Sequence record: NC_061443.1
DNA length: 64,000 nucleotides
Reading direction: 5' to 3' (one strand)
This document shows, piece by piece, positions 6,373 through 64,000 of this stretch. Position 1 is the stretch's first letter; the number at the start of each line of letters is the position of its first letter. The translations under genes were made by a program, and so were the position numbers. The notes beneath the pieces were generated by a model that saw only the letters and a program-made list of their open reading frames with translations, was not told where the DNA came from and ran no database searches.

Positions 6373-6399
6373 AAAAAGGAGGACCGAAGCCCTCCTTTT
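6373..6399 (-). terminator. Rho-independent terminator after the tail sheath gene
   Basis: Minus strand AAAAGGAGGGCTTCGGTCCTCCTTTTT: stem with C(UUCG)G loop and U tract. Confidence 0.85.
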
Positions 6400-6403
6400 G
6401 TGA

Positions 6404-10949: not shown

Positions 10950-10969
10950 AATACCCTCCGTTGTTCGTG

Positions 10970-20000: not shown

Positions 20001-20252
20001 AGTCGTTTTAACCGGAAACGTATCTTCGAGATACTGCATCTGGTTCAGGAACAACTCACCTTCGGTCGAAGTGAAGATCTTGCCGTTACGCAAGTCATCG
20101 GTGGGCATGTGATCAAGGACGAGTAGTGCTTTTCCGCCTTTAGCGCTTTTACTCACGCTTTTCAGAAGTCGAACACCGTCATAGGTCTGCATGTCTGCAA
20201 ACTGCTCTGGCGGGTCGAAGTCAAGAGCTATAAACTTTGGTTTGTTCACCAT
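17085..20252 (-). CDS. polA: Family A DNA polymerase with N-terminal uracil-DNA-glycosylase-like domain and 3'-5' exonuclease
   Basis: ExoI AVDTET, ExoII NAKFD, ExoIII YAGLD; TGRTSASDPNLQQVP; motif A DYSAHE, motif B RNAVKTVIFGLIY, motif C VHDS; N-terminal PDYVLTFGKAPFKAL and YHTVLNP resemble family-4 UDG. Confidence 0.92.
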   Translation of the reverse strand: MVNKPKFIALDFDPPEQFADMQTYDGVRLLKSVSKSAKGGKALLVLDHMPTDDLRNGKIFTSTEGELFLNQMQYLEDTFPVKTTLDDWSFLVVSYNMFKTYDKGEQFKEDADAAFAERIREIIVSYKPDYVLTFGKAPFKALNNEKIQFSKDHYEHWYGVEIPTKVKSDGKKHSFIHLPNVSYHTVLNPMHISGSSYTLGYMARWMLPWLNKGMRYKIDEVTCGKKRNWDLVYVTKVKQLEKILKRMKRAKKVAVDTETENLNRIKNKILTVQLSCDGQKAYVIPIYHRDSPFTPKELRRVSEMLKDYFEDNSNKYQIYTNAKFDLNVMRSNFGIRSYAANVWDIQAGEFANDENAKSLLNVTGAGYYNLANLTMQYGCQVYHEVSFGKEMRATIADVDLDESVQEYAGLDVIVPFRIAEKQMLRANDIKYAKYESMVSEQISDQIHAFSILETTGAGADIDYLFKLNLPNSPINEEIRNVEREFMNSPEVKAANKLICQDDNVPKMGLMGRVEVTKFDMSKSEHKQILFFDVMKLKPLKEGEQLRENGKKTGKLDKDFQAAYADIPLVALYSKLGKAYKLKNAYVNSLLKLWGESEDFKHDRSIRPTYGYLGVVTGRTSASDPNLQQVPSRSEMGKLIKRILIARKNRLLIKVDYSAHEVRGWSIISGDQGVADVFEQGRKLRHRFRTVPDPWIEHRVEAEGDVHKINAAYFFGIPNVMDVTKSVRNAVKTVIFGLIYQQGDKGLAKSTGRDVKEIAEIKGKFLTRFPVGLKWFDKIKKFAHENFFVESPVGRRRHLWGLMLPESHKEANMVHAACDRRAVNSPVQGFGSDLMMSAIRILDRMKFEYWKANGEYPDFDMNVSVHDSLTVDCDYKWIFLALDMIERAMTSAVVEVVQKRHAGFEFTSVPEIDFEIGASEKDVQGWNFSYVQLHKLIKDGLIIKRDELGEKNLDVDKTTDSIMQDQYHLMSDWMKKQLWANNIKIRSMDKVNPLTNKDKKNVEEWLAELPKNTKTFEKYKAEEAAKKAAASADGAPKKIKISKSMLKNALKGIAKK

Positions 20253-21714: not shown

Positions 21715-24700
21715 TTACACTGCCTTGTTCTTGGTAGCAGTAAGTTTCAGACGGTCAAGAGCCGTCGTCACTTTCTTGATGTTCGTGATGCTGTAGCCAG
21801 CTTTCACGATCTTGTTGATACGTGCTTTAGCGCCAGCGACATTCTTCACGAAACCAATCCACATACCAGGAGAGGAGTCGAAGGTACCGAACTTACGGGT
21901 GTTTGGAATCTTCGTACCGATGAAGCGTTTCATCTGTGGGTTCGTGTTCAGGTCGAACATGATACGCAGACGATCTTCCATCACCATCGGGTATGCCTTG
22001 ACGTGTTTCTTATCAGAGGCTGCCTTATGGCGAATCAGGAAGAACTGCTTCAACTGCTCCTGAGCTTTCAACGCCAACTTAATGTTGAAGCCCATACGAG
22101 GCGTAGACTCGTCAAAGAAGTCCAGCACAAACTCCAAACGCTTCTCGGAAGGCTTGTCGAATGCCAGTTTCTTCTTAGTCTCGATGAAGTCGAGCATCGC
22201 TTCGAAGTCAGAGTAGTAGGCACAGTCGTAATACACGTAGTCACCGAACTCCACAAAGTCGAAGTCCTTGAGAGCCTTAGCATCAGGGTCGGTAGCGTTC
22301 GCGTAAATTGCCACGAAGCCGTTATACACGGTAGGAGTCAGTTCGAGTGCCATATCAGCACCGCCAACGTCATCCAGAACCGCAGCGGCAACAGGTTTCT
22401 TACGACGAGTTGTGTTATCCAACGCAGGCAGTTCCGCAGGCTTACGACGACGAACACGACCAGCAGCCTCAGCAACACCTTCGTTGATTGGCTTACCTTC
22501 TGCCTTGTTCTCGGTACGTTTCTTGGCACGAGCGGTCTTACGCGCTACGGCCACAACCTTCTTCTCTGTCTCAACCGTGTCGGCAGTCTCAGTCTCGTCC
22601 TGAATGGTGTCTTCAACTTCAACACGATTCGCTTCGGCAGTAGCACGTTTGCGGTCTTTCTCATTTGCCCACGGCTTACGGACTTCGAAGAACTTCTTGA
22701 GATCAGACTTATCAACTTTAGTTGCGATATGTACCTTCGCAGCAGGGAAGCTAACAGTCTCGCCTGTACCAGCCAGACGCACACGCACGGTACTGATTGG
22801 ACTGTCTGCACGGAGCTTGCCGTCAACAGTACGCACAGTCACAGACACGATAACACCATTACCGTACTCAGTCACAACAGGTGCACGGTTCAGAGAGTCT
22901 TTCAACCCTTCGCCGCTCGTGAAGTTACGGTTACGCGCCCAGTCAAGCAGACGCTCAAGGCCCCAGCCGTAGCGATCAGGAATCTTCTGGTTAGCAACAA
23001 ACGGAGTCTGTTCCATAACACGGAAGTCATTCAGAGCAGGCGTTGACGGCAGTGCTTGCATTGCTGCAATCGTCGTCTTACGCATCTCCTGGAATTCCTG
23101 AGACTCGATTTCGTTCAGGTCACGCTTCGCAAGGAAGTAGTCCTGGAAGTCAGCCATTGTGTTGTTATCGATCAGGAGCTTGGCGCTCATTTTGATCGGG
23201 TCCAACTTGTACTGGTCGAGTGCTTCGTAACGCTGGTTACCTTTCTCGTCGAAACGAGTTTTCTCCAGTGTCTTCCACATCAGACGAGCGACCTTACCAA
23301 CTTCAAGGGTCTTGTTCGTCATTACCCAGTCAATGAACACAACTTCACGAGCCATGTCGCCTGGCTTACCGTCTTCGTCCAGCTTCGCAGCAGCAACGTC
23401 AGGCCGGAAGATACGCGCAGTAGACTGATCGTAAGTACCCGGCGACCACGGTGTATCGCAGCGGATGATACGGCTACCCATCTGCATGTTGTGGCCTTCG
23501 GAAATTGCCTGCTCGTTCGCAATCAGAATCTGGACGTTGTTGTCCGTCTTGAATGCGTCGAGGTTAGCGTCTTTGTTCTGGCCCAGCTTGCCTACTTCAC
23601 CGTGATACACTACAGCAACTTTCTTGTAGTTCTCAGGCAGAGCGTTGTAAATGGCGTTAGCAGAACGAACGTAGCGCGTGAAGACAATCAGCTTACCCTG
23701 CACCTCTGGCTTCCAGTATTCTGGATCATCTGGTGGAGGAGTCATGGACGGAGGCAGTGCTTGACGCTTGAACTCTTCGGACTGCTTACGGGCCAGATAC
23801 TTCTGACCGTTATAGACAGCAATGTCCAGCTCACGAGGAGTAACGCCCGGCTTCCAGTCGAAGATCTGTTGCTCACCAACCATCTGGTCACGTTCAGGCT
23901 GCACTTCGAAGTGCTTCTTGATACGGTCGATGATGGTCATGACTTTAGCGGATGTGAAGTTGGTAACGCCGGCAGCTTCAAACGTCATACGCGCAACGTC
24001 ATCGCCCATCGGGTCAGTCAACATCATTTCCATACGCTGGAAGTACATGTTCAGGTCAGCATTACCTGCAAGCAGTGCGCCGAGGTCATCGCCTTCTTCG
24101 ATATCGTCTTCGTCAATGTCAGAAGCGTTGTCACCATCGCCACCAGCATCTTCGTCGTCTTCATCACCTGCAGCAGAAGCCTTGCGCTTCGCAGCATTAG
24201 CCGCGTCTTGCAATTTCTCCAGTACCTGTTCGTACATCGCGTTATACACCTCTTGGTGCAACGCGGAGTTAGGAACAGTTGGGCCATCAATCTCAACCTG
24301 AATGAAGGTATCAATCGGGTTCGGCAGCATGAACGCCCAGTGCTTACGTTTGAACGAGATGAACGCAGTATGGTTCGCCATACGAGAGTGAGCACGACGA
24401 ATCATTTCGATATCGTCTTTCGCACCGTCATACGCCACGTCAAGGTTATCGCCGAACATAGCAGGCGTCATCAACGCAGCCTGACCAACGATATCACGCA
24501 CACGGTCGGTTACCAGCGTACCTGTAGCGATACGTGCATAGCGAACAGACGGAGCAGTGAACACCGCTTTGGTGTTGAAGTGTACCTGAGAGCCTGACTG
24601 GCCACCAGAGAAGTTCTTCACCTTGTGCGATTCATCGAGCAGCACGTAGCTGAAACGGAAGCGGTTAACAAACTCTACCGCGCCACGAATACGCACACGC

Positions 24701-52232: not shown

Positions 52233-53519
52233 TTACTTCTTCTTTTTCTTTTTCGCAGGCTTGTCGTCTTCGTCGTCCTCACCGAACTTGACCGCCAGCT
52301 TACCTTCATAGATATCAGCCATGAGAGTAAGCACTTTGGACTCCAGCATAATGTCTGCTGGTACGGACGTTGAGTTGAAAGCGACTTCGGCATCTGCCAA
52401 CACGGATTGCAGATACACAAGACTGACCAGGTTGATCTTGATGTTATCCTTACGTGTCATGTTCAGGAACATCTTGAGTCCAGCCGTCTGCCACTTATTC
52501 GTTTCAGCAGCATGACCAATCACACCGTGAATGATCCAACGAGCTTTCGCTACCATCGCACGTGGGTTGTTCGCTTCACGCAGGAACTGAATAACACCAA
52601 TCAGGTCCATCGACAGATACGCACCAATCATCTGGACGGCCTTCGCTTCCATGTCGATTTCTGGATCTGCTGCCGCGAGTTCGGCAACGAGGTTCTTATC
52701 GAACTCCTCACCACCACGTACGGACGCATAGATGTTCTGCAACATCGTGATTGCGCCACGCATCTGACCACCAGCATACTCTGCTACCTGATGCAATGCT
52801 GTCTCAGCTTTATCACGCGCCTTGTCTTTCTTCGGCAAGATAGAAAGCTGGTCGCTAATCTCAACCAGACGCTTATGGATTACGTCAGTAGGGATAGGTC
52901 TGATAGGCAGTTGCGTCATGCGGCTGATCATCGTGTTCTTCATCTTCTCAGGGTTCGTTGTTACGAAGATGAATACAACGTGAGCTGGTGGCTGCTCAGT
53001 GATTTTCAACAGCTTGGATTCTGCTGCGCTGGACATTAAGTGGGATTCATCGAAGATGAACACACGGCGTTTGAACATAGGACTCAGAGGTGCCGAGTCA
53101 ACAATCTTCTGGCTACCGTCCACTTTACCTGCATCGCCACCCATGTCAAACTCTTGCTCGTCAGGGTGCGCACCACGGTCGTGCATCTCACACGAACGAC
53201 ATTTACCACAGGCGCTGAATGTTTCGCAGTTGATATACTTCGCCACAAGACGAGCGAACGTTGTCTTACCAGAACCGAGATGACCCGTGATGATCATCGT
53301 ACTAGGAACTGTCTTCGACTTCTGCCAGCCCTTCATGATCTTAACGATGTGGTCTTGTCCCACATAGTCTTCGATACGTTTTGGTCTAAACTGATCAGCG
53401 AAGTTAATCGTGGTCAGTTCACCCGACTCAGAAGAATCGCCTTTCTTCTTCTTCGACGGCTTACCATCGTCAAAGCTACGCGCCTTCTTCTTTTTCTTTT
53501 CGTCTTTTGCCATTTTCAA
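52233..53519 (-). CDS. dnaX: Clamp loader ATPase, DnaX (Pol III gamma/tau)-like
   Basis: FRP....DYVGQDH, GHLGSGKTT.AR, zinc module C...ACG.C.SC, FDESHLMS, LLKITEQPP.HV.FIFVTT, TMISR, GGQMR. Confidence 0.9.
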   Translation of the reverse strand: MKMAKDEKKKKKARSFDDGKPSKKKKGDSSESGELTTINFADQFRPKRIEDYVGQDHIVKIMKGWQKSKTVPSTMIITGHLGSGKTTFARLVAKYINCETFSACGKCRSCEMHDRGAHPDEQEFDMGGDAGKVDGSQKIVDSAPLSPMFKRRVFIFDESHLMSSAAESKLLKITEQPPAHVVFIFVTTNPEKMKNTMISRMTQLPIRPIPTDVIHKRLVEISDQLSILPKKDKARDKAETALHQVAEYAGGQMRGAITMLQNIYASVRGGEEFDKNLVAELAAADPEIDMEAKAVQMIGAYLSMDLIGVIQFLREANNPRAMVAKARWIIHGVIGHAAETNKWQTAGLKMFLNMTRKDNIKINLVSLVYLQSVLADAEVAFNSTSVPADIMLESKVLTLMADIYEGKLAVKFGEDDEDDKPAKKKKKK

Positions 53520-53550
53520 TTCGCCCTTTGTTCTAATGCGTTACACCAGT

Positions 53551-53559
53551 TATTTACAG
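53551..53559 (-). promoter_or_regulatory. CTGTAAATA motif upstream of the clamp loader gene
   Basis: Exact copy after a terminator. Confidence 0.7.
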
Positions 53560-53567
53560 TATTTAGA

Positions 53568-53607
53568 CAAAAAGAAAGGACCACATCCAAAACGGAGGGT
53601 CCTTTTA
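53568..53607 (-). terminator. Rho-independent terminator
   Basis: Minus strand AAAAGGACCCTCCGTTTTGGATGTGGTCCTTTCTTTTT. Confidence 0.65.
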
Positions 53608-53659
53608 CGTGTAGTAATAAAGTTTGGAATGATAACGCATCGGCAGTGGGCGCTGGCGA

Positions 53660-53857
53660 TTAGGCAAAGCTCAACTCCCAGCGTGGTACAACGCGGAAGA
53701 AGCGCTTAAAGTGGGATGGTGGGTCATTCTTGATTGACTCAAGTTTCTGCTCCACTACATCGTAATCTTTTATGCCACTCTCGACGGTGTGAGTGGTGAA
53801 CGTACCGTCAGCCTCAATCAAGTCGGCGACAACACGGTAGCTTGGTTTACTCTGCAT
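53660..53857 (-). CDS. Small hypothetical protein
   Basis: 65 aa; AGGAGA RBS; CTGTAAATA at 53897-53905. Confidence 0.6.
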   Translation of the reverse strand: MQSKPSYRVVADLIEADGTFTTHTVESGIKDYDVVEQKLESIKNDPPSHFKRFFRVVPRWELSFA

Positions 53858-53896
53858 CTATTCTCCTGAAACGATTTATCTCGTTGCTCTGAATTA

Positions 53897-53905
53897 TATT
53901 TACAG
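53897..53905 (-). promoter_or_regulatory. CTGTAAATA motif upstream of 53660..53857
   Basis: Exact copy. Confidence 0.6.
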
Positions 53906-53948
53906 ATTACTGGAGTAGTCACAAAAGATTAAAGTCAGACAATTCTTA

Positions 53949-54195
53949 AACTCCAATAGCAACTCACAGGAATTGTTATTGGAGTTCACCCTCAGGCAGA
54001 TGACGGTCTGCGCGAAGGTGTTCTCCCCGTGTCTTTCGAATGCGCCGACACGGTAGCGCTCGCGGTCTTACACTCTTATCCTGCATCAGGTCGGTCGGCA
54101 GGTAGCAGGTACCTGACGCAAAGAGCAGCCGCTATCGGCCATTAGCGATAACGCGGTGTTACGCTTAACGGCCTAGGTGACTCTGGCCGAGTCTG
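53949..54195. ncRNA. Candidate structured non-coding RNA (unassigned family)
   Basis: ORF-free in an otherwise gene-dense genome; at least six adjacent hairpins (see findings). Confidence 0.35.
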
Positions 54196-54197
54196 TA

Positions 54198-54251
54198 CAA
54201 AAAAAAAGAGTTCGGCCTATCCCCAATTCGGCAAAAAGAACAGGCCGAACT
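54198..54251 (-). terminator. Terminator with alternative (bistable) pairing
   Basis: Minus strand AGTTCGGCCT-N23-AGGCCGAACT followed by CTTTTTTTTT; a second GCCGAAT lies inside the loop. Confidence 0.7.
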
Positions 54252-54296
54252 AAACAGTCAACACACACTCCATGTGCGCTGTTTTGTACTGTAACA

Positions 54297-54325
54297 AATT
54301 AGAAACAACTTGAAATATTCAGACA
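54297..54325 (-). promoter_or_regulatory. Sigma70-like promoter TTGTCT-N17-TCTAAT, overlapping a CTAATTT motif
   Basis: Minus strand AAGAA TTGTCT GAATATTTCAAGTTGTT TCTAAT TTG. Confidence 0.5.
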
Positions 54326-54329
54326 ATTC

Positions 54330-54917
54330 TTAGTTCAACATCGGAAGAAGATTTTCTAAGAAATGCTGGCGATCAAATGAACTAATTCGGTGAGGATGGT
54401 TGATGTGCAGGTTCCATCCTTTGTCGAACAGCAACACGTTCTTCGGCAGGACAACGTTAACGCCAACGCGAGTGAAGGAGTCACGCACGGCAGTAACTGG
54501 ATTATCATCTACAAGAATCCAAGTACCTTCACCGTACGTCGCATTCAGGAACGCAACCTTGTCTGGATGCTCACGACTATCGAGGCAGTGAATGTGATCG
54601 AACAGCGACAAGTGTTTAGACAGAGACTTGCGGGTGTATCGTTCACCCTTCTCATGATAACCGCGATGTGTACAGATGCCTGCGCTGAATCCATCACGTA
54701 CCAACATAGCTACGGTCTGAATGAAGTAATCGCGCATGTTGGCTTTCAGCATGAAGCTACCATCGTTCAGCATGTCAACGAAAGGTTGCTTGCCGTTCTC
54801 TGGCGTAATGTACGTATCGGTCCCTGGGTAGATTCCCCAGTTCATCAGATAACACAACATGAAGCCGTGCGTATCAAATGCCGTGTCGTCCATGTCGAAG
54901 AAAATATGTTTGATCAT
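54330..54917 (-). CDS. HAD-superfamily 5'(3')-deoxyribonucleotidase-like phosphatase
   Basis: Motif I FFDMDDT, motif II ICTHRG, K in PDKVA, motif IV LVDDNP. Confidence 0.82.
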   Translation of the reverse strand: MIKHIFFDMDDTAFDTHGFMLCYLMNWGIYPGTDTYITPENGKQPFVDMLNDGSFMLKANMRDYFIQTVAMLVRDGFSAGICTHRGYHEKGERYTRKSLSKHLSLFDHIHCLDSREHPDKVAFLNATYGEGTWILVDDNPVTAVRDSFTRVGVNVVLPKNVLLFDKGWNLHINHPHRISSFDRQHFLENLLPMLN

Positions 54918-55261
54918 TAATGCCTCGTGCTCTTAACTACCAGAGGAATATCGTTAATGAATGCCAGTGTCAGCAACTCGCTGTTAAAGCGCAGGCGCAT
55001 TTCATCAGCATTCGTAACAAGGATAATATCGGACAGAGGGTCAACCTTGAAGATTGGAACCTCAATGAGAACGGCAGTATCTTCATCTTCATCCGCATCA
55101 ACAATGAAGTAAGCGCCGTACATTAAAACAGTATCACCAGAATCGACGAGATGACCTACGATTGCGTCCTCTCCGTCCATGATCATGTGCAGAGGTTGAT
55201 CGATGTAGTAACCGCTATCATCGTCTGCTCCGAACTCAAAGTGGAAATCATCATCGCTCAT
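54917..55261 (-). CDS. Small acidic hypothetical protein
   Basis: 114 aa, D/E-rich, coupled start/stop. Confidence 0.6.
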   Translation of the reverse strand: MSDDDFHFEFGADDDSGYYIDQPLHMIMDGEDAIVGHLVDSGDTVLMYGAYFIVDADEDEDTAVLIEVPIFKVDPLSDIILVTNADEMRLRFNSELLTLAFINDIPLVVKSTRH

Positions 55262-55263
55262 GG

Positions 55264-55836
55264 TTATGCCCTCAGATCAACCAGTATCGAAGCACTCAAG
55301 TCTCGGAGCATGTCTCGTCCAAGAGAGGTGTACATCGTCTGCGATACAACTATACGTTCTAGGAAGAGGCGTGAACTGGTAACGTCATGGCCTGTCTTCT
55401 GCCGAACGAACTCAATGATTGAAGACGAAGGCTGAATGAGGAACGTGAGTATCTCGGCATCGTGTAGCACGTTACCCATTGCTGTCACAGGACGCATTTC
55501 TGTTTCCTGATCGAGGATGTATGAGATGACTCGGTCTTCATTGCCTATATTGCGGAAGAGCTTAAAGAACTTTCGTGCCGACTTGACGGTGTCCATAAAG
55601 TCGTAGTTGGGATTCGTCGGCATACGTAGGAAAAGGGAAGCGAGCAACAAGTTTATTTCTAACTGCGGACCTTGTTCAATGTTCAACATCGCATGAGAAG
55701 TCAATACAACATTCAACGAGAAGTCACGAGTATAGAGCGGGTGAGAGGTCGCTGTCTGATCAAAGTAGTCAAGGGCGGAACGCAACCCCTGACGTATTAA
55801 CAGGTGCTCTGCTTTGATTCGAGAAAGGCGTTGCAT
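55264..55836 (-). CDS. Hypothetical helical protein, possibly a degenerate HD-domain
   Basis: LLLASLF and VLHDAEIL loosely recall HD helices; the canonical HD dyad is absent at the expected site. Confidence 0.45.
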   Translation of the reverse strand: MQRLSRIKAEHLLIRQGLRSALDYFDQTATSHPLYTRDFSLNVVLTSHAMLNIEQGPQLEINLLLASLFLRMPTNPNYDFMDTVKSARKFFKLFRNIGNEDRVISYILDQETEMRPVTAMGNVLHDAEILTFLIQPSSSIIEFVRQKTGHDVTSSRLFLERIVVSQTMYTSLGRDMLRDLSASILVDLRA

Positions 55837-56810
55837 TACTCTGCGCCGCTGATCTCTTTCAGGCTATTCTTGATCGCTTTACGCAGCGTCTTACCAACGT
55901 CAATGCCGTCGATATGTTTTGCGAATACGTTAGCGAACAAGGTGGTTGGGTTTTTCATAATCGCTTTATCGAGATCAGGGCGGCCTTCTGCAATCTGCAA
56001 CTCGCCTGGCCAGAGTTCTGCAACTGCCGCGCTATCGTTAGCAGCAATCAGTTCCAGTTCACGGACGGAGATAGAGTTTTGCCGAGCAATCGTACGGAAG
56101 ATTATGTCAACGAACGGAAGCATGTCCTCGCTAACAACGTTCTTCACGTCCTTAGCATCGCCCGCACGTTGGAAATCTTCGAGCAGACCTTCGAGGTGTG
56201 TCTGCGTGATCTTCTGGACGTTGCGCAGTTTCTTGAACAGCATCATCCAGCGGACCTTACGCTTGGAACTCAACAGGTGAGTCCAGACAGATTCACCGAG
56301 TGCGATCATCAGACGATTGTACACGTCAACGCTCAACACATCACGATCAACGAAGACAGTCATCTCGTCATGCCATTCGTCCTTACGGAACTTAGAACGG
56401 AACGCATGAGTCTTCGAACCTGACTGCTGGACGAAGTTGATTTGTTTGCAGCGGCGAACAGCTTCTGCCAGATGATATTTCTCAATCACCTTCGGAAGTT
56501 TCTTAACGCCCATGCGACATGCTTTCGCTACTTCGGCCTCACGACCGAAAAGAGACAGACGAGGCAGTCCACCGTAGACAGGCATTGAAGCGTACGGTCT
56601 TACGGTTACACCACACACTGACATACCCGGTTCTGGATCAGGACCCAGAATGCAAAGTACGTCGCCCGCTTTAGGACTGAACTTGATTGTCTCAGGGTCT
56701 GGCGTACCCATCGTGTTAGCCAACAGACCAACAGTGTTACCTGTAGCCAGTACCAAATGGTTTTTGTTACCCTGCCTTACGACAAGGTAATCTTTTTCAC
56801 TGTGTTTCAT
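55836..56810 (-). CDS. Hypothetical protein, possibly a degenerate zincin-fold
   Basis: LMIALGESVWTHLL and NPTTLFANVFA sit where HE.GH and E.FAE.F occur in anthrax-LF/MPTase-like domains, but the ligands are missing. Confidence 0.5.
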   Translation of the reverse strand: MKHSEKDYLVVRQGNKNHLVLATGNTVGLLANTMGTPDPETIKFSPKAGDVLCILGPDPEPGMSVCGVTVRPYASMPVYGGLPRLSLFGREAEVAKACRMGVKKLPKVIEKYHLAEAVRRCKQINFVQQSGSKTHAFRSKFRKDEWHDEMTVFVDRDVLSVDVYNRLMIALGESVWTHLLSSKRKVRWMMLFKKLRNVQKITQTHLEGLLEDFQRAGDAKDVKNVVSEDMLPFVDIIFRTIARQNSISVRELELIAANDSAAVAELWPGELQIAEGRPDLDKAIMKNPTTLFANVFAKHIDGIDVGKTLRKAIKNSLKEISGAE

Positions 56811-56818
56811 AACGACCT

Positions 56819-57355
56819 TTACTGTGAAATTTGATCAACGATATCCAGCGTATGAACTTCGGCAGTGTAGCCTTGACGGAAGATGCGACCTTCCGTACGT
56901 GCCGCTGTCTGTTCATAGGATGCAGGAGACCACGACATTGCAACTTCGACCGAGATAAGAGCTTGCTCGTCCCACATGTCACCGTCTTCAAGATAGTCGG
57001 CAATCATGCTGAGAGCAGCAGGGCGATCGAGGCCCAGATGCGCAAGCTCGGCGATAATGAGTTTCGGCGCGGTGCCGTCTTTCATTTCGTCAAGTTCGTA
57101 TTGAAGATCGGAAAGCGAATTAACTTGATGGCAATCAGCACCGGTCAAGCCTTCGTATTCGTCTTGTCCGAAATAAGCAATTGCAAAGTCAGGAATATCA
57201 AGTTGACTGGAAAAGAAATGAGGAGCGTCCACCAGAATAGAAGGTGCAGCGCTCACTTGGAGAAAACTCATGTAAGGTCGTTGCACCTCATGAGCTTCTA
57301 CCGAACAGGACTTCCCAGCAAGGTCTTGCATTATGCTGTGTGCGAGATTATTCAT
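56819..57355 (-). CDS. Acidic hypothetical protein
   Basis: 178 aa ORF in operon. Confidence 0.6.
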   Translation of the reverse strand: MNNLAHSIMQDLAGKSCSVEAHEVQRPYMSFLQVSAAPSILVDAPHFFSSQLDIPDFAIAYFGQDEYEGLTGADCHQVNSLSDLQYELDEMKDGTAPKLIIAELAHLGLDRPAALSMIADYLEDGDMWDEQALISVEVAMSWSPASYEQTAARTEGRIFRQGYTAEVHTLDIVDQISQ

Positions 57356-57362
57356 TGTAACC

Positions 57363-57566
57363 TCATTTCTCAGGAGTAGGGGTAAAAGGGCTGTGGACGT
57401 ACGGGCTTAACTTATCCACGTACAGGAATCGAGATGTAAGCTGACGATACGACTGGCTTGGCTCAGGTTTGGCTTCGACACGTTGCGCATCAGATTCGTC
57501 AAAGATACCTCGACGATGGAACTTAAAATCAGGGTGTACTGAAATATCTTTGACGATTGCTGTCAT
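57363..57566 (-). CDS. Small hypothetical protein
   Basis: AAGGAA RBS; near-consensus CTGTAAAC at 57596-57603. Confidence 0.55.
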   Translation of the reverse strand: MTAIVKDISVHPDFKFHRRGIFDESDAQRVEAKPEPSQSYRQLTSRFLYVDKLSPYVHSPFTPTPEK

Positions 57567-57605
57567 ACGTTATTCCTTACATGTGATTGCTCTAAGTTTA
57601 CAGAA

Positions 57606-58130
57606 TCAATCAGTCTTACCGAGAATGCGCTCCAGCTCATACGCGAGATAGTCATCCCAAGTAGGGAAACCATCTTTCGCCAGAAGCGGATCATGTTGCC
57701 TATCAGCTTTCGACCCTTTAGGAAATCGAATCCTGTTGGACAGACGTTGCAGTCGGTCATACATGAAGCGAGCGTGTTTGACGATTTGATTCTTCTCAGG
57801 CAAATGTTTTTGCAGCAACTTATAACTGAACGTCAGCGGGAAGTCACGTTCGGTCACAACATTATCTTTCATCTTGCTGATAAGGTTCAGGTACTGATCA
57901 ACGCTTTGGTGTTTTTCTGGATGTGCATAGTACCAATCATCCAGAGAGTCCAAGCCATGAAGTTCTTCATAGACCATAGCCTCATACATCACCATTAAGA
58001 TCGGCTTCGTGATCTTTTTGCTTTTGTAGTTGGCAAAAAGATCAGAGCAACTGCCAAACTTAGACTGCATGATCAATTCCAAGATTGTGGCGTAACGTAC
58101 AGCTTCGTATTCGGTAAGTACCTTACTCAT
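57606..58130 (-). CDS. Hypothetical protein
   Basis: 174 aa directly downstream of the PolA-like gene; GGAG RBS. Confidence 0.6.
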   Translation of the reverse strand: MSKVLTEYEAVRYATILELIMQSKFGSCSDLFANYKSKKITKPILMVMYEAMVYEELHGLDSLDDWYYAHPEKHQSVDQYLNLISKMKDNVVTERDFPLTFSYKLLQKHLPEKNQIVKHARFMYDRLQRLSNRIRFPKGSKADRQHDPLLAKDGFPTWDDYLAYELERILGKTD

Positions 58131-58133
58131 ACT

Positions 58134-59750
58134 TCACTCCGAGAATATCTTTTTATCGTAGAACTTCTTGCACACAAACTCTGCATTTGGGCTAGATATA
58201 CTTTCACCCTCCATGCAAAGTAAAGCCCCGTCGTGCTCAAGAGAATACACACCCTTGACATTCGGACAATTAAGAATTGCATCAAACAGGAACATACTCT
58301 CCCAGCCTGATAGCATATGGTTGAGTACGCGCTTCTTAATCTTCTTGTCAGTTTCATCAGGATCTGGATCATAGACAGACCCCGTTGCGCATTGCAACAC
58401 ACCATACTCCGGTCGATGCGCATTTTTATTTTTACGGAACTTAGCCCGGTACACAGCCAAGAGGTCAGTGATTGCTAGCCAGAGCGGTGTCACCCTCGTG
58501 TTCCAGTCAATCAATTCATCTTTTACTTTATACTTGGGCATGAAGCGTGTCAGTTCCTTGAAGACGTTGCTGTAGGACGTCACCTCCAACTGACCTGCCG
58601 AGAATATAGTGGCGTACAGGCATACCTTAGCCGCCCGCTTATCGAGTCCGAGTATTCGCGCAATATCTTCCACCGAGCTAACGGTATCAAACATCGCACA
58701 CTCAATCCCATTAGCCTCGAACTCCTTTCGCAACACGTTGAACTGGCTGGACTTCATATCCCAGTTAGTCCCTATCGTGTAGCAATCCTCTTTAAGACTC
58801 GAGGGTAAGTTCTGGAACCCACCACCAACCTCAAACAGACGTCCACCAATTTGCGACAGCTTGTACTTAGGCCAATAGCGCACTACGAGAGGAGACTCAC
58901 TCACAATCTGAACAGGCCCTGACACAATCGTATCGAGTAACGTCTTCACCTGCAGGTACTGCTTTCGCGCCTTGTGATTAGCGATTAACGATCTATCTTC
59001 CAAATAAGCAAGTATAGGATCGAGATTCACTTCATTCGGCAGGAGCTTATCTAAAACTGCTCGGTATAACGCACGGCCTTTAAGCTCCTTACCGTTACCT
59101 CTGTCACGATTACGGTCCAATGAAGACAGGTCATGTACGGGGCGTTTGAAAGGTAGCTTAGAGTTTTTCTGAATCTGCGACCACACCGTTACCCCATAAT
59201 CTTCTCTAAGAATCTTGAGAGGACTATAGAATCGGATGCGATGCAGAATATCATAATGCGATTGAGGCTTGAAGTGGCCGTACATGCCATCTAAGACTTC
59301 AGGACGCATCCTAAACTCGCGGCAAAGCCCCTTAGCCTTGTTATAGTTCTTCGTTTCGAAAATATTGGCTCTCAACCAGTCCAATGACCTGTCGAAAGTC
59401 CCCTTTTTGGACTTAGCGTATTTGCCTACCGCTATATTGTCCCCGCCACGTCGATGCCCGAATACCATCGGTAGCTTTTCTTGACCTAAAGAACGTGGGA
59501 ACGGGACCCAGACCCGCCCAAACTTCTTCTTTTTATGTTTACGAGCAGGATATAGGCTGCATTGAAGAATGTGCCAGAAGAAAAGGTTCAATTGAGCACG
59601 AAACTCACGCTCTCCGCTTTCAGGCCCCGTGTACGGGCAAGCGTTTATCACGTTGTCTCGCACCCATAAAACGACTTCTTTCTCCTGGTAAGAGGGGCTC
59701 GTTATCAAAACTGGCCCGTTGCCGGAAACGATTCGTTTTTTCATGTTCAC
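58134..59750 (-). CDS. Divergent family-A-polymerase-fold protein lacking an exonuclease domain
   Basis: GGRLF...FQNLP..LK (cf. TGRLSS..PNLQNIP), motif A WDMKSSQF, motif B KRAAKVCLYATIFS, NHMLSGWES (cf. N..iQgsaAD), motif C LEHDG. Confidence 0.6.
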   Translation of the reverse strand: MNMKKRIVSGNGPVLITSPSYQEKEVVLWVRDNVINACPYTGPESGEREFRAQLNLFFWHILQCSLYPARKHKKKKFGRVWVPFPRSLGQEKLPMVFGHRRGGDNIAVGKYAKSKKGTFDRSLDWLRANIFETKNYNKAKGLCREFRMRPEVLDGMYGHFKPQSHYDILHRIRFYSPLKILREDYGVTVWSQIQKNSKLPFKRPVHDLSSLDRNRDRGNGKELKGRALYRAVLDKLLPNEVNLDPILAYLEDRSLIANHKARKQYLQVKTLLDTIVSGPVQIVSESPLVVRYWPKYKLSQIGGRLFEVGGGFQNLPSSLKEDCYTIGTNWDMKSSQFNVLRKEFEANGIECAMFDTVSSVEDIARILGLDKRAAKVCLYATIFSAGQLEVTSYSNVFKELTRFMPKYKVKDELIDWNTRVTPLWLAITDLLAVYRAKFRKNKNAHRPEYGVLQCATGSVYDPDPDETDKKIKKRVLNHMLSGWESMFLFDAILNCPNVKGVYSLEHDGALLCMEGESISSPNAEFVCKKFYDKKIFSE

Positions 59751-59810
59751 ATCATGATTACCTGATTTTTTCTATCGTTTCTTTACAGATAAAGACTCAG
59801 CCCCTCCGAA

Positions 59811-59877
59811 AGCTACAGCTACAGCTACAAGCTAGGAAGGAGGTAGTACAGATAGCTGGCTAGGCATGGCATGGCAC
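59811..59877. repeat. Short tandem repeats: (AGCTAC)3 plus AGCTA, and GGCAT-GGCAT-GGCAC
   Basis: agctacagctacagctacaagcta at 59811-59834; ggcatggcatggcac at 59863-59877. Confidence 0.8.
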
Positions 59878-60028
59878 GCTTGAAACATACAAGCACATGT
59901 ACATCTTTAGGCGGCACGTTTCAGAGACATGCAAAATGAAAGAACCATACTCCTACTAACCCACAGCAGGGCGTATGTGGCCCATAGGTGCAGATCTAGC
60001 AGAAAACCCTAGGTCGTCTAAACCGTGT

Positions 60029-60150
60029 AAATTTTCCGTCAAAAACAGTCCGTTTTTTAACCAAACGCCTGTTTTGACTCTGAAAATGCGGGAAAATCCG
60101 AGAAAAATCAAGGACTTTCCCGTTTTGAAACGAAAAATCAGATCATTTTT
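60029..60150. other. Helically phased A/T tracts (intrinsically curved DNA; candidate ori or pac site)
   Basis: A3-6/T3-6 tracts start near 60029, 41, 53, 63, 72, 83, 93, 103, 116, 123, 133, 146 (about 10-10.5 bp period). Confidence 0.65.
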
Positions 60151-60796
60151 TCTGCGAAACGCGCTTCCCGAGCTTAACTCCGATTTGAGTCAGGATGCGT
60201 TTCACTGTATCGCCGTCATGTTCTTCCATTGCAGCGCCCAAACGCTCGCCCTGTTCACGCGATAGCTCAGGCATAATCATTTTAAGCATCTGCGAACGCT
60301 GTTTCGCTGCTTTAGACTTGCCTTTCGAGACAGACACGCCCTCATTCGCTGCTAACGCACTGCTAATCGCCTTTTGCACACGACGATTGCCGAAGATATC
60401 TCCGAATATGTCACCGAACAGGTCTTTGAACGACATACCGCCGCTCATGATATCGTTCTTAGTGAAACGCACAGGCTGTCCGAGCGCGTTTGTGCTATGG
60501 GTCGATTCGACCTGATTCGTTGTACGCCCACCAGCACGGAAGTTCTCGTCAGGACGGGAGGCTTTACCCTCTGCACCCGGCTTAGTGTTACCGTTGCGCA
60601 AATCAGGGTCACCTTCAACAGCCTTATTCGGATCGAACATATCGTCCGCTGTTTCGCTCTGGTTAGGGTCGAAGGGAATCTTGCCTGTCAGCTTATTCGG
60701 GTCCGGCCAGCTATCAGGAATGTCAGACGCTGGTTGTGGCTTGTTTGTCATATCGCCATTTGCTTCGCTGCTCAGGCTGATCTTAATGCGAGTCAT
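60143..60796 (-). CDS. Hypothetical protein with ISLSS tag, disordered Pro/Asp-rich N-half
   Basis: MTRIKISLSSEAN; second AISSA site; AGGAG RBS. Confidence 0.65.
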   Translation of the reverse strand: MTRIKISLSSEANGDMTNKPQPASDIPDSWPDPNKLTGKIPFDPNQSETADDMFDPNKAVEGDPDLRNGNTKPGAEGKASRPDENFRAGGRTTNQVESTHSTNALGQPVRFTKNDIMSGGMSFKDLFGDIFGDIFGNRRVQKAISSALAANEGVSVSKGKSKAAKQRSQMLKMIMPELSREQGERLGAAMEEHDGDTVKRILTQIGVKLGKRVSQKK

Positions 60797-60804
60797 GTTT
60801 GCTC

Positions 60805-61911
60805 CTATCGGATTTTATTGCCTTTGAATATGTTGTACGCAATCTCTTTGCGCTGAACAGGACGTGTGGTGCACACCCATTCCCATTGTTCGTTCTTCGC
60901 TGTGCGTTTCTTAGGTGCTTCCATAACTTTCAGCACATAGTTTTTGAACGGTAGGACGAGAATGTCCTCAGGCTCAATCGCACCGCTACGCGCAGGCAGG
61001 ACTACCGTGATGTTACCGACAGTCAGTTCCTGATCGTAGTTCAACACGTTCGCTTCTTCGCTGATGTTGCCCTTGACGGCGCTAACACCTAAATCGAAGA
61101 TCATAGTAGCGTGAGTGAATGCTTCAATGCCTTTGATGCGCACCGTCACATGCTTACCTCGCCACGGCTCCAGATTCGCAGCAGTCAGTTCCTGCTCTAC
61201 GCCGTTAACCACCAGCATAGGACGAGGGAAAGCAGGCAGCATTGTTTCATTCAGTCGCACCGAATATGTAGCCTGCGTAAAGTATTTTGGAATAAGCTGA
61301 TCGAAATCAACGTGTCCGTCTTTGCGTACCTGCCTGAATGTCGCAGGGCTGGTGGACTGATCGAGTGTGTATGCCGTCAACACTTTCGCATGGTGATGCG
61401 TCATAACGTTATACACAAAGCCTGTGCTGATAAATCCAGGCACAACACCCTGACGGAAGCAGATGCCGCAGTTCGCAACGTTACCTGCATCCCATCCGTT
61501 CGACACTTCTTCGTCGCCGTTACCCATCAGGTCAGCGGCGTCCATTACTGCGTTCATGCCATCGTCGATATCATCGAGAGATACTACTTGGCGCCCACCG
61601 CCAAACATACCTTTTGATACCGTACCAAGCTTAACGCCTGAGTCCATAACAGACGATTCACGACCGAGAGACTTCATGCCGCCTGTCTGCTCGTCGAAGA
61701 TATCGTTGTCAACCTTGTTGCAACTACAGGTCAGACCCATCTTCGCTTTCTTGAAGATGATTACGTCAGTGGCATCGACCTGTAACGCCTGTTCTACCTT
61801 GGACTGCACAACCTTCTGAACCGAGTCGAGGCGCTGTTGGACGCGATCCGTTTCGTAGGTCTTATGGCGGTCGTAGGTATTTCGCGGTCGTCCGCGCTCA
61901 ATCCAGCTCAT
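60805..61911 (-). CDS. Putative head-closure/neck (head-tail joining) protein with zinc-binding insertion
   Basis: V.IFKK...G.TCSC ... C.ICFRQGVVPGF pattern and C-terminal GD..VL.....Y.V beta-barrel, as in large-myovirus head completion proteins; CTAATTT upstream. Confidence 0.45.
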   Translation of the reverse strand: MSWIERGRPRNTYDRHKTYETDRVQQRLDSVQKVVQSKVEQALQVDATDVIIFKKAKMGLTCSCNKVDNDIFDEQTGGMKSLGRESSVMDSGVKLGTVSKGMFGGGRQVVSLDDIDDGMNAVMDAADLMGNGDEEVSNGWDAGNVANCGICFRQGVVPGFISTGFVYNVMTHHHAKVLTAYTLDQSTSPATFRQVRKDGHVDFDQLIPKYFTQATYSVRLNETMLPAFPRPMLVVNGVEQELTAANLEPWRGKHVTVRIKGIEAFTHATMIFDLGVSAVKGNISEEANVLNYDQELTVGNITVVLPARSGAIEPEDILVLPFKNYVLKVMEAPKKRTAKNEQWEWVCTTRPVQRKEIAYNIFKGNKIR

Positions 61912-61934
61912 AATCGTTCTCCTCTGTGTGGCTT

Positions 61935-61941
61935 AAATTAG
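61935..61941 (-). promoter_or_regulatory. CTAATTT motif
   Basis: In the divergent intergenic region before 61911. Confidence 0.6.
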
Positions 61942-62009
61942 TGTGGAGAATTTAGGACCTTCACCCTAGTAAATACTTATTTAGAGTACGTTAAAACACG
62001 GAGCCTTTT

Positions 62010-62558
62010 ATGCGTATTCTTTCAGGCGACCCGGGCAAGGTTAACTTCGCGTTGTCTGTTCAGGAGTTTAAGGACAAGCGCATTACCGTGCTGGGTACGC
62101 GGATGTTTCAACATCCTATCCAGAATCTGCATTATGACATGCGCCAGCCTACAAAAGAGTTTCTGGCGGAGCTTGAATTGATGTGGAAACTATACGGACC
62201 GTTCGACGCCATGTGCTTCGAGCGATTCCAGTCGCGTGGACTTGGCGGTAACACGATTGAAGCAATCAGTCTGATGCTGGGTGTTATCTCATTCTTCGCA
62301 CTGAAAAAGAAATGCCCGCTTGATTTGATTACGGCGAGCCAGTGGAAGAACGCATTCAACCGCACAATGGATCTCAAAGGTTATTACGCAGAACATAACC
62401 TGACGTCCAAAAAGAGTCGCAAAGCGATTCACGAATTTGACGCCAGCCTGATTGGCGTCTATACCTTTTACCGTCATTCAGGAATCAAACCGTTCGCTGG
62501 CTTCAATCGCATCATTGATGTATATGTGCCTAAATTCCTGGACGCACCTGTGTTGTGA
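62010..62558 (+). CDS. ruvC: RuvC-like Holliday junction resolvase
   Basis: ILSGDPG..NFA, CFERFQ, ITASQWK, H...DASLIG carry the RNase H-fold acidic residues. Confidence 0.8.
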   Translation: MRILSGDPGKVNFALSVQEFKDKRITVLGTRMFQHPIQNLHYDMRQPTKEFLAELELMWKLYGPFDAMCFERFQSRGLGGNTIEAISLMLGVISFFALKKKCPLDLITASQWKNAFNRTMDLKGYYAEHNLTSKKSRKAIHEFDASLIGVYTFYRHSGIKPFAGFNRIIDVYVPKFLDAPVL

Positions 62559-62564
62559 GGACAT

Positions 62565-62930
62565 ATGGAACAGCTTGACCTGTTACGAGTAGTAAATGAG
62601 ATCGTCAGTGAGTTCGGGCGCTCTCATTATCTGGCGCAAGGAAGTGTTGGTACAAACACAGAACACTATGCGACGTATGAAACTCTGATCTCAGTCATGG
62701 CCGATAGCACTGGCTCTTTCCATGAGGCAGATCTTCGTGCTAAGATTGCGGCGCAGATTGACGAGTATCGTGTTGTGGGATTCACTCGCACCTACAACGA
62801 GCAAGTCAAAGAGTTTGTGCTGAAACTGACCGACCCTGTGTTCACCTACCGCGACCCGCAGGAATGTCCTGCAAATGGTAAAGTTTTGTATTCTGTTTCC
62901 ATTGGTTTCCCATTCGTTGCCGCCAATTAA
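62565..62930 (+). CDS. Hypothetical protein
   Basis: GAGGA RBS; 121 aa. Confidence 0.65.
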   Translation: MEQLDLLRVVNEIVSEFGRSHYLAQGSVGTNTEHYATYETLISVMADSTGSFHEADLRAKIAAQIDEYRVVGFTRTYNEQVKEFVLKLTDPVFTYRDPQECPANGKVLYSVSIGFPFVAAN

Positions 62931-62931
62931 T

Positions 62932-62940
62932 CTGTAAATA
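62932..62940 (+). promoter_or_regulatory. CTGTAAATA motif on the plus strand, upstream of a plus-strand gene
   Basis: Orientation flips with gene orientation, which supports a directional promoter role. Confidence 0.7.
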
Positions 62941-62970
62941 TCCTTACTTGGTTAACGTGCGCGTGGGATA

Positions 62971-63654
62971 TTGAAAATGGCGAAGTTGAAGAAAGAACCA
63001 GCGGCGAAAGTCAAAAAGAAAAAGACTTTGGCTGTCAAAACAAATAAAGAAAAAACGATTCCTATTCGTGTTGTGCAGGACACACGACCGATCATCACTT
63101 GCCCTGAAATGGAAGATAAGCCTCAGCCGTTTCTGTTTCGTGGCCAATGTCCAATCGTCACCTGTCAGTATTGCACACGCGAGACACCGACAGGTTGCAT
63201 GGCGCTTGACCGTAAAGAGTCAGCGGATCGTTCAATCTCCAACAAGGAGATACTCCATTACAAGAAAGGTCTCTTCCCTGAACTTAAAGAGATGGATCAG
63301 AAGACGCTGGACAATACGATTCGACGCGCACAAAATCGTACCCGCAATGCTATCTGTCTTACTATGTTTATTGCCGGGATTGATGATTCTGATTGCGATC
63401 GGTCTTTTAAATATGTAGAGGGCCGCTCCAAACTCGTCGATCAGGTTCATAACTATCTGATTCAAACGTTCAACGATTACCGTCCGTGGATGCTTGCGTA
63501 CCTCGACGACGAAAAACGATTCAGCGACATGGTTGGCAAAATAACCAACTCTGACTTTAATTTAGTTAACGCATTACGTTTGACTCCTCGTAAGTATCAG
63601 ACGTTCTGCCAGTCGCTACAAAATCTTAAACAATCTGGAGACTCTCATGAGTAA
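62971..63654 (+). CDS. Hypothetical protein with Lys-rich N-terminus and Cys cluster (CPIVTCQYC...GC)
   Basis: CTGTAAATA at 62932-62940 upstream; likely start at 62977 (MAKLKK). Confidence 0.65.
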   Translation: MKMAKLKKEPAAKVKKKKTLAVKTNKEKTIPIRVVQDTRPIITCPEMEDKPQPFLFRGQCPIVTCQYCTRETPTGCMALDRKESADRSISNKEILHYKKGLFPELKEMDQKTLDNTIRRAQNRTRNAICLTMFIAGIDDSDCDRSFKYVEGRSKLVDQVHNYLIQTFNDYRPWMLAYLDDEKRFSDMVGKITNSDFNLVNALRLTPRKYQTFCQSLQNLKQSGDSHE

Positions 63655-64000
63655 CTTTATCTCCCTCGATCAGTATCGCGCGTTCATCAAGCGCAATATC
63701 CTGAAAGAGCCTCAGATGCTCGTCATTAATCAGACGCAGCCTCTGGGACAAATCTTCTTCCAATGCCCCGGCGATAACTTTGCGATGAAAGATATCATCG
63801 TGCCTGCATCGAAGAACGCGGTCGATCTGACTCAACAGGCGCCACTGGAAAATCTGCTGGCATGTAGTCAACTGAAAGCGCTGCTGCAAACGCAGAAACT
63901 CGTGCTGCTGAATCCGGAAGAAATGCCAACTCCTGGCGAAGGTATTCAGATGCCGCAGTTGAACACGCCTCCTGTTGCTGGTGCAGTGTCTGTTGACGGC
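63647..64000 (+). CDS. Hypothetical protein, partial (runs off the window; not in ORF track)
   Basis: GGAG RBS, ATG at 63647 overlapping the upstream stop; open frame MSNFISLDQYRAFIKRNILKEPQMLVINQT... to the window end. Confidence 0.65.
   Translation, partial: MSNFISLDQYRAFIKRNILKEPQMLVINQTQPLGQIFFQCPGDNFAMKDIIVPASKNAVDLTQQAPLENLLACSQLKALLQTQKLVLLNPEEMPTPGEGIQMPQLNTPPVAGAVSVDG

Follow-up and report, generated by a model that had tools for sequence, protein, structure and literature searches.

Sequence and structure predictions assign a hypothetical gene of Erwinia jumbo phage pEa_SNUABM_2 to the TV-Pol family

Introduction

Why does a jumbo phage that has a main DNA polymerase of its own carry a second polymerase-like gene? 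The question is raised by pEaSNUABM2_00220 of Erwinia phage pEa_SNUABM_2 (MZ443786.1; genus Alexandravirus; 265,442 bp), which we analyzed within a stretch of 64,000 nucleotides from sequence record NC_061443.1 (the window; window position = record position - 124,000). In GenBank, the product of this gene, and of every gene around it, is given as "hypothetical protein," and the sole PHROG match of the 538-amino-acid (aa) protein is PHROG 30690, whose function is unknown. A first-pass annotation of the bare sequence had proposed a second family A polymerase here, acting as a primer-making or initiator enzyme.

The answer which we reach is that the gene very probably encodes a TV-Pol (Transposon-Virus polymerase), a family named by Iyer, Abhiman and Aravind in 2008 (PMC2579912). 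TV-Pols were defined as nuclease-free proteins of 400–600 aa that combine an Arg-bearing hairpin and a palm with two Asp residues with a thumb of coiled-coil type and fingers of helix-turn-helix type. They stand alone, are fused to D5 helicases, or carry an N-terminal helical domain (PMC2579912). Transposons and small replicons carry them, as do viruses, among which cyanophage Ma-LMM01 has one as an integrated element, and from the genomic context they were predicted to be both primase and polymerase (PMC2579912). The protein is not a new kind of enzyme. It is an unannotated addition to a known, almost untested family described in 2008, which the first-pass annotation had not recognized.

Results

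Predicted fold

We built an AlphaFold model on the alignment of close homologues (mean predicted local distance difference test score, pLDDT, 78.5; about 90 over residues 240–530) and compared it with the PDB using Foldseek. Klenow was found first (E 2.5e-5, probability 1.00), followed by Taq, M. smegmatis Pol1, Bst, Pol theta, and T7 DNA polymerase, and the alignment to PolA covers about 300–380 columns. The mitochondrial RNA polymerase (POLRMT) was among the matches at ranks 34 and 47 only.

The modelled layout is canonical. A helix follows the strand that D331 closes, K375 is part of a long helix, and D507 sits in a beta-hairpin turn between strands 498–504 and 508–513. R304 is located in a hairpin ahead of the palm (strands 296–298 and 305–307), and the fingers are a helical insert (335–435) which follows the first palm strand. 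The assignment of a two-helix thumb is based on secondary structure only. The first-pass annotation had named a structure prediction as the check on its palm and fingers. The check gave the PolA fold with both Asp residues, D331 and D507, properly placed. Its proposal of a second, exonuclease-less enzyme of the family A fold that keeps all catalytic landmarks is thus borne out by Foldseek, by the profile comparisons below, and by the motif coordinates, as every motif it listed could be located in the open reading frame (ORF) (Table 1).

Sequence and profile searches of the PDB and NCBIfam with the 538-aa protein gave nothing meaningful. The sole PDB match of a broad profile, to a designed repeat protein, was partial, weak, and repeated, and we took it to be spurious. 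PADLOC returned just scattered single weak matches.

Family assignment

An exhaustive profile search gave 415 cluster representatives at E up to 0.001. They are mostly about 450–650 aa long, and most share chiefly the C-terminal 250 residues. An alignment of 71 sequences was used as the family profile, and 15 homologues form the close clade. The 71 proteins have no NCBIfam name and belong to PHROGs 30690 and 34692, both of unknown function.

With hhalign, the 71-member profile matched E. coli Pol I at E 2.3e-4 across residues 663–886, pairing K375 with K758, Y379 with F762, F383 with Y766, H506/D507 with H881/D882, and R304 with the GR of the Pol I motif TGRLSS. In the comparison with T7 DNA polymerase, D331 paired with D475 and Q336 with the steric-gate residue E480. 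The comparison with T7 RNA polymerase was not significant (E 0.089) and covered motif C alone. Profile comparison with the phage's own 1055-aa polymerase gave nothing significant; hence, the gene is not a recent duplicate of the main polymerase, and this origin was rejected.

Microcystis phage Ma-LMM01 gp030, a 506-aa ORF beside two transposase genes (IS605-type), was matched by hhalign with a probability of 99.7% (E 3e-26) across 408 columns, the N-terminal domain included; gp030 was equated with the published TV-Pol by phage, size, and transposase neighbors, not by accession number. Besides the profile similarity to gp030, the protein has the two-helix thumb, the Arg hairpin, and the two-Asp palm, and it has no nuclease domain. 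None of the ORFs neighboring the gene received a nuclease assignment. Within 12–20 kb, no D5-type helicase, resolvase, integrase, or transposase was found in pEa_SNUABM_2 or its relatives; such linkage is a frequent context of TV-Pols, not a strict criterion. The fold and the family membership are well established by these comparisons, and we assign the gene with high confidence to a TV-Pol branch that has a basic N-terminal domain. As this core keeps all residues for nucleotidyl transfer, the protein is, judged by its sequence, most likely an active template-dependent polymerase.

The structure search of BFVD ranked a 1019-aa giant-virus protein, annotated as "replication origin-binding protein domain," above the classical PolAs and below the phage's own clade. 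Another family member is encoded beside a resolvase gene on a 13.7-kb Calothrix plasmid, which matches an association described for TV-Pols. On this plasmid (Calothrix sp. NIES-4105 plasmid6, not listed in PLSDB), the TV-Pol gene lies at about 12626–13588 and runs across the record start, adjoining a 535-aa resolvase-domain gene. As no other replication protein is annotated there, the TV-Pol may be the plasmid's replicase.

Active-site residues

Among the close homologues (n = 15), the alignment is invariant at R304, D331, Q336, K375, Y379, F383, E484, H506, D507, and G508. In the 71-sequence set, R304, D331, K375, and E484 are invariant, and D507 is retained in 70 of 71. The signature of this set reads GR..E.GGG.Q / NYD..SSQ / K..LYA...GA / LQG.EA.FIH / NEHDG.

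Q336 is equivalent to the steric-gate Glu of Klenow, as had been aligned correctly before. The altered gate is not special to this gene, because Gln is the state of the family: the column holds Gln in 62 sequences, His in 7, Phe in 1, and Asn in 1, and Glu in none. Gln is nearly as bulky as Glu. Hence, Q336 alone gives no prediction on the use of ribonucleoside triphosphates (rNTPs), and the choice of sugar cannot be read from the sequence.

K375 is preceded, four residues ahead, by Lys in 13 of the 15 close homologues and by Val, Arg, or Lys in the wider set. In the close clade, the first basic residue of the RxxxK motif of TV-Pols is thus mostly Lys, and across the wider family it varies. 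The position of Klenow F762 is mostly Tyr across the family. A strictly conserved Asp was not seen in the fingers in the 71-sequence alignment, and the NFG/YG signature of classical Pol I-type motifs is absent. The position equivalent to Tyr639 of T7 RNA polymerase is Phe here and Phe or Met in the wider family.

E484 is the invariant residue of the motif 6 equivalent, in which S481 takes the position of Klenow Q849, a minor-groove contact. This position is Ser, Ala, or Thr in the close clade. In motif C, H506 and the catalytic D507 are followed by G508 at the position of Klenow E883, and Gly is found there in 70 of the 71 family sequences.

N-terminal domain

The N-terminus had been described as basic, which holds: residues 1–290 have a pI of 10.0 with 52 Lys + Arg against 28 Asp + Glu. 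Residues 122–157 form a helix-hairpin-helix stretch. With a separate model of residues 1–225 (pLDDT 77.6), Foldseek gave no significant match in the PDB (best E 1.9). Many of the non-significant matches were winged-helix proteins, which we treat as a hint only. As residues 1–225 are mostly helical and have no PDB match, they do not form an exonuclease fold.

The pentapeptide QLNLF of this domain had been proposed to bind the beta clamp, and the phage does encode a clamp-like processivity factor (Table 1). Clamp-binding motifs usually lie in flexible termini or linkers. Here, QLNLF lies in the middle of a 23-residue helix (44–66) and runs on into a conserved core, FWHxxQ. In 10-residue blocks, the mean pLDDT of its region is about 85–95 when the N-terminal domain is modelled separately and falls below that in the full-length model. 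Q[LIV]N[LI]F is retained in the 15 close homologues, and Phe alone is retained in the 71-sequence set. Buried in a helix and unconserved beyond the close clade, which the first-pass annotation itself had named as grounds for giving up the idea, QLNLF is not supported as a clamp-binding motif.

Exchangeable cassette

The gene is found at the same syntenic position in 56 jumbo-phage records by tblastn, always with a "hypothetical" product. These records comprise Alexandra-, AD1-, Y3-, JA-, and Yoloswag-like phages and Yersinia phage fHe-Yen9-02 and thus several genera, and identity among them ranges from 100% to about 22%.

The window is 86.7% identical to phage Alexandra over 53097–57579 and over 60091–64000. 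Between these flanks, in 57580–60090, just a 263-bp patch aligns, at 68%. AD1 is evenly 78.7% identical throughout. As the divergence from Alexandra is confined to this segment and AD1 is even, the small ORF, the TV-Pol gene, and the upstream DNA were replaced together in one lineage. The cassette has diverged further than its flanks, with 46% amino-acid identity against about 87% nucleotide identity. The Alexandra counterpart of the divergent segment spans 4538–7063 of the Alexandra locus (L013), and one mosaic boundary falls at the terminator-like hairpin.

No similarity was detectable between the 174-aa ORF and the small downstream ORFs of Alexandra or of distant loci. A conserved partner protein like MP, the partner of the CcPol discussed below, was therefore rejected. 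The findings on the cassette and on the upstream DNA and flanking gaps described below fit a cis-acting site linked to the enzyme and, equally well, a promoter with a long leader.

Upstream non-coding region

The 392-bp non-coding stretch that had been proposed as a candidate origin is real, but hallmarks of an origin are missing from it. In 59751–60142, there was no Rfam match, no sigma-70 promoter, and no standard terminator call, and repeats were only weak. The hairpin at its distal end is plausibly a terminator and, together with the conserved blocks that are unique in the window, suggests a separate transcription unit. As RNA, the region folds at -128 kcal/mol (z = -4.17), and 0 of 100 shuffles fold as well. 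Consensus folding of three sequences yielded no support from covariation. TAGC-type words are enriched in the region, from which we draw no conclusion, given the genome-wide rarity of CTAG and the post hoc nature of the test. Such words recur in the non-coding flanks of the TV-Pol genes on two other loci (L008 and L011).

Two further places in the window deserve mention. A second long non-coding gap, 53858–54329 (472 bp), is the largest in that part of the genome, and its position is kept in Alexandra, AD1, and Y3; no feature is annotated in it. Transcription switches from minus to plus at 61911–62010, a 98-bp gap beside the Holliday-junction resolvase gene, where the cumulative GC skew also levels off. 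If skew or gene orientation marks an origin in this phage, this gap, 1.8 kb away, is a better candidate than the region upstream of the TV-Pol gene.

Replication genes and genomic contexts

The main polymerase (17085–20252, minus strand, 1055 aa; PHROG 17; NCBIfam PRK05755, E 1.7e-59) keeps DYSAHE at residue 655, as had been noted. SbcCD homologues are encoded in the region of the TV-Pol gene. By phmmer with the DnaG-type primase of the L011 phage and with T7 gp4, no primase was found in the 64-kb window, and the 1950-aa and 533-aa helicases, which are SNF2-like and XPB-like, have no detected primase domain. In JA11, genes for a sigma factor, SSB, and RecA are annotated nearby, and the DnaG-type primase gene lies 8–9 kb from the TV-Pol gene, as it does by homology in pEa_SNUABM_2. 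With a primase and other replication genes present, the TV-Pol is an addition to a full replication set.

The 1950-aa ORF (21715–27567, minus strand) is matched over its whole length by a phage-specific PHROG named "DNA helicase" (21391). By comparison with the PDB and NCBIfam, just a short segment at about residues 1290–1390 could be recognized, as the C-terminal region of an SNF2-type helicase, and most of this very large protein is without an assignment. A 224-aa ORF (10329–11003, minus strand) matches PHROG 20094, "DNA polymerase," at E 2.3e-84 and has no NCBIfam match.

We took the contexts of the wider family from five look-ups, leaving out one contig (L007) that was too short. The four other members on long metagenomic contigs all lie in large phage-like genomes, with long non-coding flanks beside them. 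Their neighbors include a UvrD-type helicase, RNase H, 5'-3' exonuclease, ThyX, PhoH, DnaG primase, and a PD-(D/E)XK nuclease.

Gene start and codon usage

The annotated start of the TV-Pol gene is GTG at 59750. Several homologues start at a Met two codons downstream (MKKRIVSG), which is ATG at 59744 here; hence, judged from the alignment, this ATG may be the true start. The deposited coding sequences (CDSs) of the AD1 homologue (L014 5001–6617; 350 aa) and the JA11 homologue (L012 20001–21635; 405 aa) begin well downstream of the start of an uninterrupted tblastn match, and the JA13 version in BFVD has 284 aa. With such late starts, the N-terminal domain seems to have been lost from these records through the choice of start codon.

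Codon and base usage had been judged by eye as less optimized than in neighboring genes. For codons, this stands in a modest form: the self-referenced codon adaptation index (CAI) is 0.633 against 0.733 ± 0.069, the sixth lowest among 52 ORFs. For bases it does not, as GC and GC3 are ordinary.

Table 1 Features of the window and their coordinates
Feature	Residues	Position	Strand	Remarks
Clamp-like processivity factor		15648-16826		
Clamp loader		52233-53519		
Exchangeable cassette		57580..60090	.	Small ORF, TV-Pol gene, and most of the upstream non-coding DNA
174-aa ORF		57606..58130	-	Starts 3 nt past the TV-Pol stop; without family assignment; co-inherited with the TV-Pol gene
TV-Pol family gene, pEaSNUABM2_00220		58134..59750	-	538 aa; PHROG 30690 (unknown function)
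C-terminal part of the palm		58227..58325	-	Motif 6 equivalent LNHMLSGWES and motif C EHDG
Motif C EHDG	505-508	58227-58238	-	
Fingers	335-435	58446..58748	-	O-helix equivalent: K371xxxK375, Tyr379 (Klenow F762 position), Phe383 (Y766 position)
Motif B segment KRAAKVCLYATIF	371-383	58602-58640	-	
Motif A DMKSSQ	331-336	58743..58760	-	Asp331 codon 58758-58760, at the end of strand 328-332; Gln336 at the steric-gate position
Pre-motif-A segment GGRLFEVGGGFQNLP	302-316	58803-58847	-	
Beta-hairpin	296-307	58830..58865	-	Invariant Arg304 within IGGRLFE; FQNLP next
Predicted thumb	224-277	58920..59081	-	Antiparallel helix pair 243-254 and 259-277 (DSSP of the model)
N-terminal domain	1-225	59076..59750	-	Basic, mostly helical; homologous to the N-terminal domain of Ma-LMM01 gp030
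QLNLF	53-57	59580-59594	-	In the middle of helix 44-66
Non-coding region		59751..60142	-	392 bp upstream of the TV-Pol gene
(GTAGCT)3 run		59811-59834		Flanked by CCTCC and GGAGG
Conserved block		59900-59921		Kept in AD1 and Y3; once in the window
Conserved block		60008-60031		Kept in AD1 and Y3, partly in Alexandra and JA11; once in the window
Terminator-like hairpin		60089-60122		Followed by a T run; 20 nt past the stop codon of the upstream gene
Holliday-junction resolvase		62010-62558		

Discussion

Site-directed priming as the tentative function

We tentatively propose that this TV-Pol is a site-directed primase-polymerase. In the mechanism that we infer, the N-terminal domain would place the enzyme on a specific DNA site, plausibly in the non-coding DNA inherited along with its gene. 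Chain synthesis would then start de novo at the PolA-type active site and proceed over a short distance, after which the main polymerase with the clamp would take over. Ordinary lagging-strand priming would be left to the DnaG-type primase. The earlier idea of a primer-making or initiator enzyme agrees with the published prediction for TV-Pols (PMC2579912), and our reading is this family prediction, now supported by the structure of the cassette.

Several observations point in this direction. TV-Pols stand in for prim-pol domains in fusions with D5-type helicases (PMC2579912), and CcPol, an exonuclease-less PolA core, was shown to prime together with MP. The gene, the upstream non-coding DNA, and the small ORF are exchanged as a unit, and the hairpin with the unique conserved blocks suggests a transcription unit of its own. 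Large non-coding gaps flank TV-Pol genes in five independent phage loci, where the larger flanking gap is the largest or the second largest (Fisher p 0.0098, a post hoc statistic with n = 5 loci).

Other points weigh against it, among them the post hoc nature of this statistic and the indirect identification of gp030 given above. The phage has its own DnaG-type primase outside the window (record 190196–191263; PHROG 47, E 9e-24), as does the L011 phage. The TV-Pol is therefore not the sole possible primase, and the division of labor between two PolA-fold enzymes, which had been suggested at first, is not forced. No helicase gene adjoins the TV-Pol gene in pEa_SNUABM_2. The N-terminal domain is without a significant structural relative, so that its binding to DNA is only a suggestion. 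There are no iterons, AT-rich unwinding element, or skew switch in 59751–60142, and this region may simply be a promoter with a structured 5' leader. As of 2020, no TV-Pol of the type encoded at 58134–59750 had been biochemically characterized.

We regard it as unlikely that the 2.5-kb unit goes further and is a self-contained, exchangeable origin-plus-initiator cassette, in which the N-terminal domain would recognize the adjacent DNA and the enzyme would start the leading strand de novo. With Gln in place of the steric-gate Glu, the primers made by such a cassette could be RNA or mixed. If this were true, the enzyme would be a third kind of primase beside DnaG and AEP, working alongside a conventional primase in a cultivable phage.

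Alternative explanations

The alternative that survives best, which we consider rather unlikely but a serious one, is an accessory DNA polymerase that would need primers without being able to make them and would serve in gap filling, lesion bypass, or recombination-dependent synthesis, in a role like that of the exonuclease-less Pol theta and Pol nu. The nearest structural matches are DNA polymerases, Pol theta included, and CcPol by itself merely extends primers. The phage already has a primase, the region holds the Holliday-junction resolvase, SbcCD homologues, and the clamp loader, and the Ser, Ala, or Thr of the close clade at the Q849 position could fit low fidelity. An accessory polymerase leaves unexplained, however, why the N-terminal domain is conserved, why the gene is inherited together with non-coding DNA, and why the family is linked to helicases, resolvases, and small replicons.

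The gene could also be the remnant of a TV-Pol mobile element, domesticated or still selfish, which would replicate or maintain only its own cassette and have little role in phage replication. TV-Pols are typical of transposons and small replicons, and the Ma-LMM01 copy is integrated beside transposases. The swapping of the cassette as a unit between close relatives, its faster evolution compared with the flanks, and its somewhat atypical codon usage would all fit such an element. Yet the gene keeps the same syntenic position in the 56 genomes of several genera, has no integrase, resolvase, or transposase as a neighbor, and retains an intact ORF with invariant catalytic residues, which makes a remnant improbable.

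We consider it highly improbable that the protein is a very small single-subunit DNA-dependent RNA polymerase that serves a subset of phage genes, with the N-terminal domain for promoter recognition. The distance of TV-Pols to T7-like RNA polymerases is about the same as that to PolA (PMC2579912), the steric-gate position is never Glu, POLRMT is in the Foldseek list, and a conserved block that is unique in the window lies upstream. Against this, the match to T7 RNA polymerase is confined to motif C and is not significant, whereas the match to Pol I extends over all motifs, and the residue at the Tyr639 position is Phe. As the upstream block occurs once in 64 kb, no set of promoters is visible, and the sigma factor annotated in a related phage implies the use of the host RNA polymerase.

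The initiator polymerase tethered to the beta clamp, as drawn in the first-pass annotation, has the fit of QLNLF to QL[SD]LF and the clamp-like factor in its favor, but given the helix, the adjoining core, and the narrow conservation described above, we give it hardly any credence.

Comparison with known systems

With TV-Pols, and with gp030 in particular, the protein shares a length of 400–600 aa, the lack of a nuclease, a helical thumb, an Arg-bearing beta-hairpin, a two-Asp palm, helical fingers with the conserved Lys, and a homologous N-terminal domain, so that the profile match is almost full length. It differs in context. Here, the gene is a fixed syntenic jumbo-phage gene in a genome with PolA, clamp, clamp loader, DnaG primase, and helicases, and no transposase, resolvase, integrase, or D5 helicase adjoins it.

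The TVpol-helicase fusions of virophages, polinton-like viruses, and giant viruses (Sputnik V13 type) have the same TV-Pol catalytic domain. They carry a C-terminal D5/SF3 helicase and no N-terminal domain (PMC2579912), whereas no helicase is fused or adjacent in pEa_SNUABM_2. A TVpol-helicase-type protein of Pyramimonas orientalis virus is the best structural match with a named product outside the phage clade.

The CcPol-MP primase of SCCmec elements (Bebel et al. 2020, PMC7581432; Rice 2023, PMC10061031) likewise has an exonuclease-less family A core, is encoded on a mobile or viral genome, and has a small ORF after the polymerase gene. CcPol is the only exonuclease-less family A enzyme shown to make primers de novo. 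It uses deoxynucleoside triphosphates (dNTPs) and, at the positions of Klenow E710 and F762, retains Glu and Phe, where the pEa_SNUABM_2 enzyme has Gln and Tyr. For the 174-aa ORF, relatives could be detected within the close clade only. In one classification, CcPol is placed near the classical PolAs of the CHEAP subfamily.

Classical family A enzymes (Klenow, Taq, T7 gp5, and the phage's 1055-aa polymerase) share the fold, the order of motifs, and the equivalents of R668, D705, K758, H881, and D882. In the pEa_SNUABM_2 enzyme, by comparison, a 3'-5' exonuclease is absent, the steric-gate Glu is replaced by Gln and E883 by Gly, the motif 6 region holds an invariant Glu, and the thumb and fingers are shorter. 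We rejected the classical Pol I-like class, as the protein lacks the Glu of DYSQIE type and the RxxxKxxxFGxxYG and HDE signatures. T7-like single-subunit RNA polymerases have the same superfamily fold and a nucleic-acid-binding domain before the catalytic core. They are much larger, give no significant profile match, and have a Tyr sensing the 2'-OH that is without an equivalent here; this class was rejected on the profile comparison and on the Phe at the Tyr639 position.

Significance

The 2008 study also predicted that TV-Pols are similar to the ancestor of DNA polymerase I and of T7-type RNA polymerases (PMC2579912), and they are the presumed replicases of virophages and polinton-like viruses. 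As of 2020, none had been biochemically characterized except for the atypical CcPol-MP pair. With this assignment, the annotation of a core gene can be improved in the "hairy" jumbo myoviruses of Erwinia, Dickeya, and Yersinia. The assignment also indicates that a large phage with all the parts of a conventional replication set can carry a TV-Pol as well; what such an extra enzyme does there is the question that follows. The interest of the finding lies mainly in a cultivable system for TV-Pol function. The phage and its host offer a tractable setting for the family prediction, in which priming by a PolA-fold enzyme with a Gln steric gate, its choice of nucleotides, and the genome site on which it may act can be addressed.

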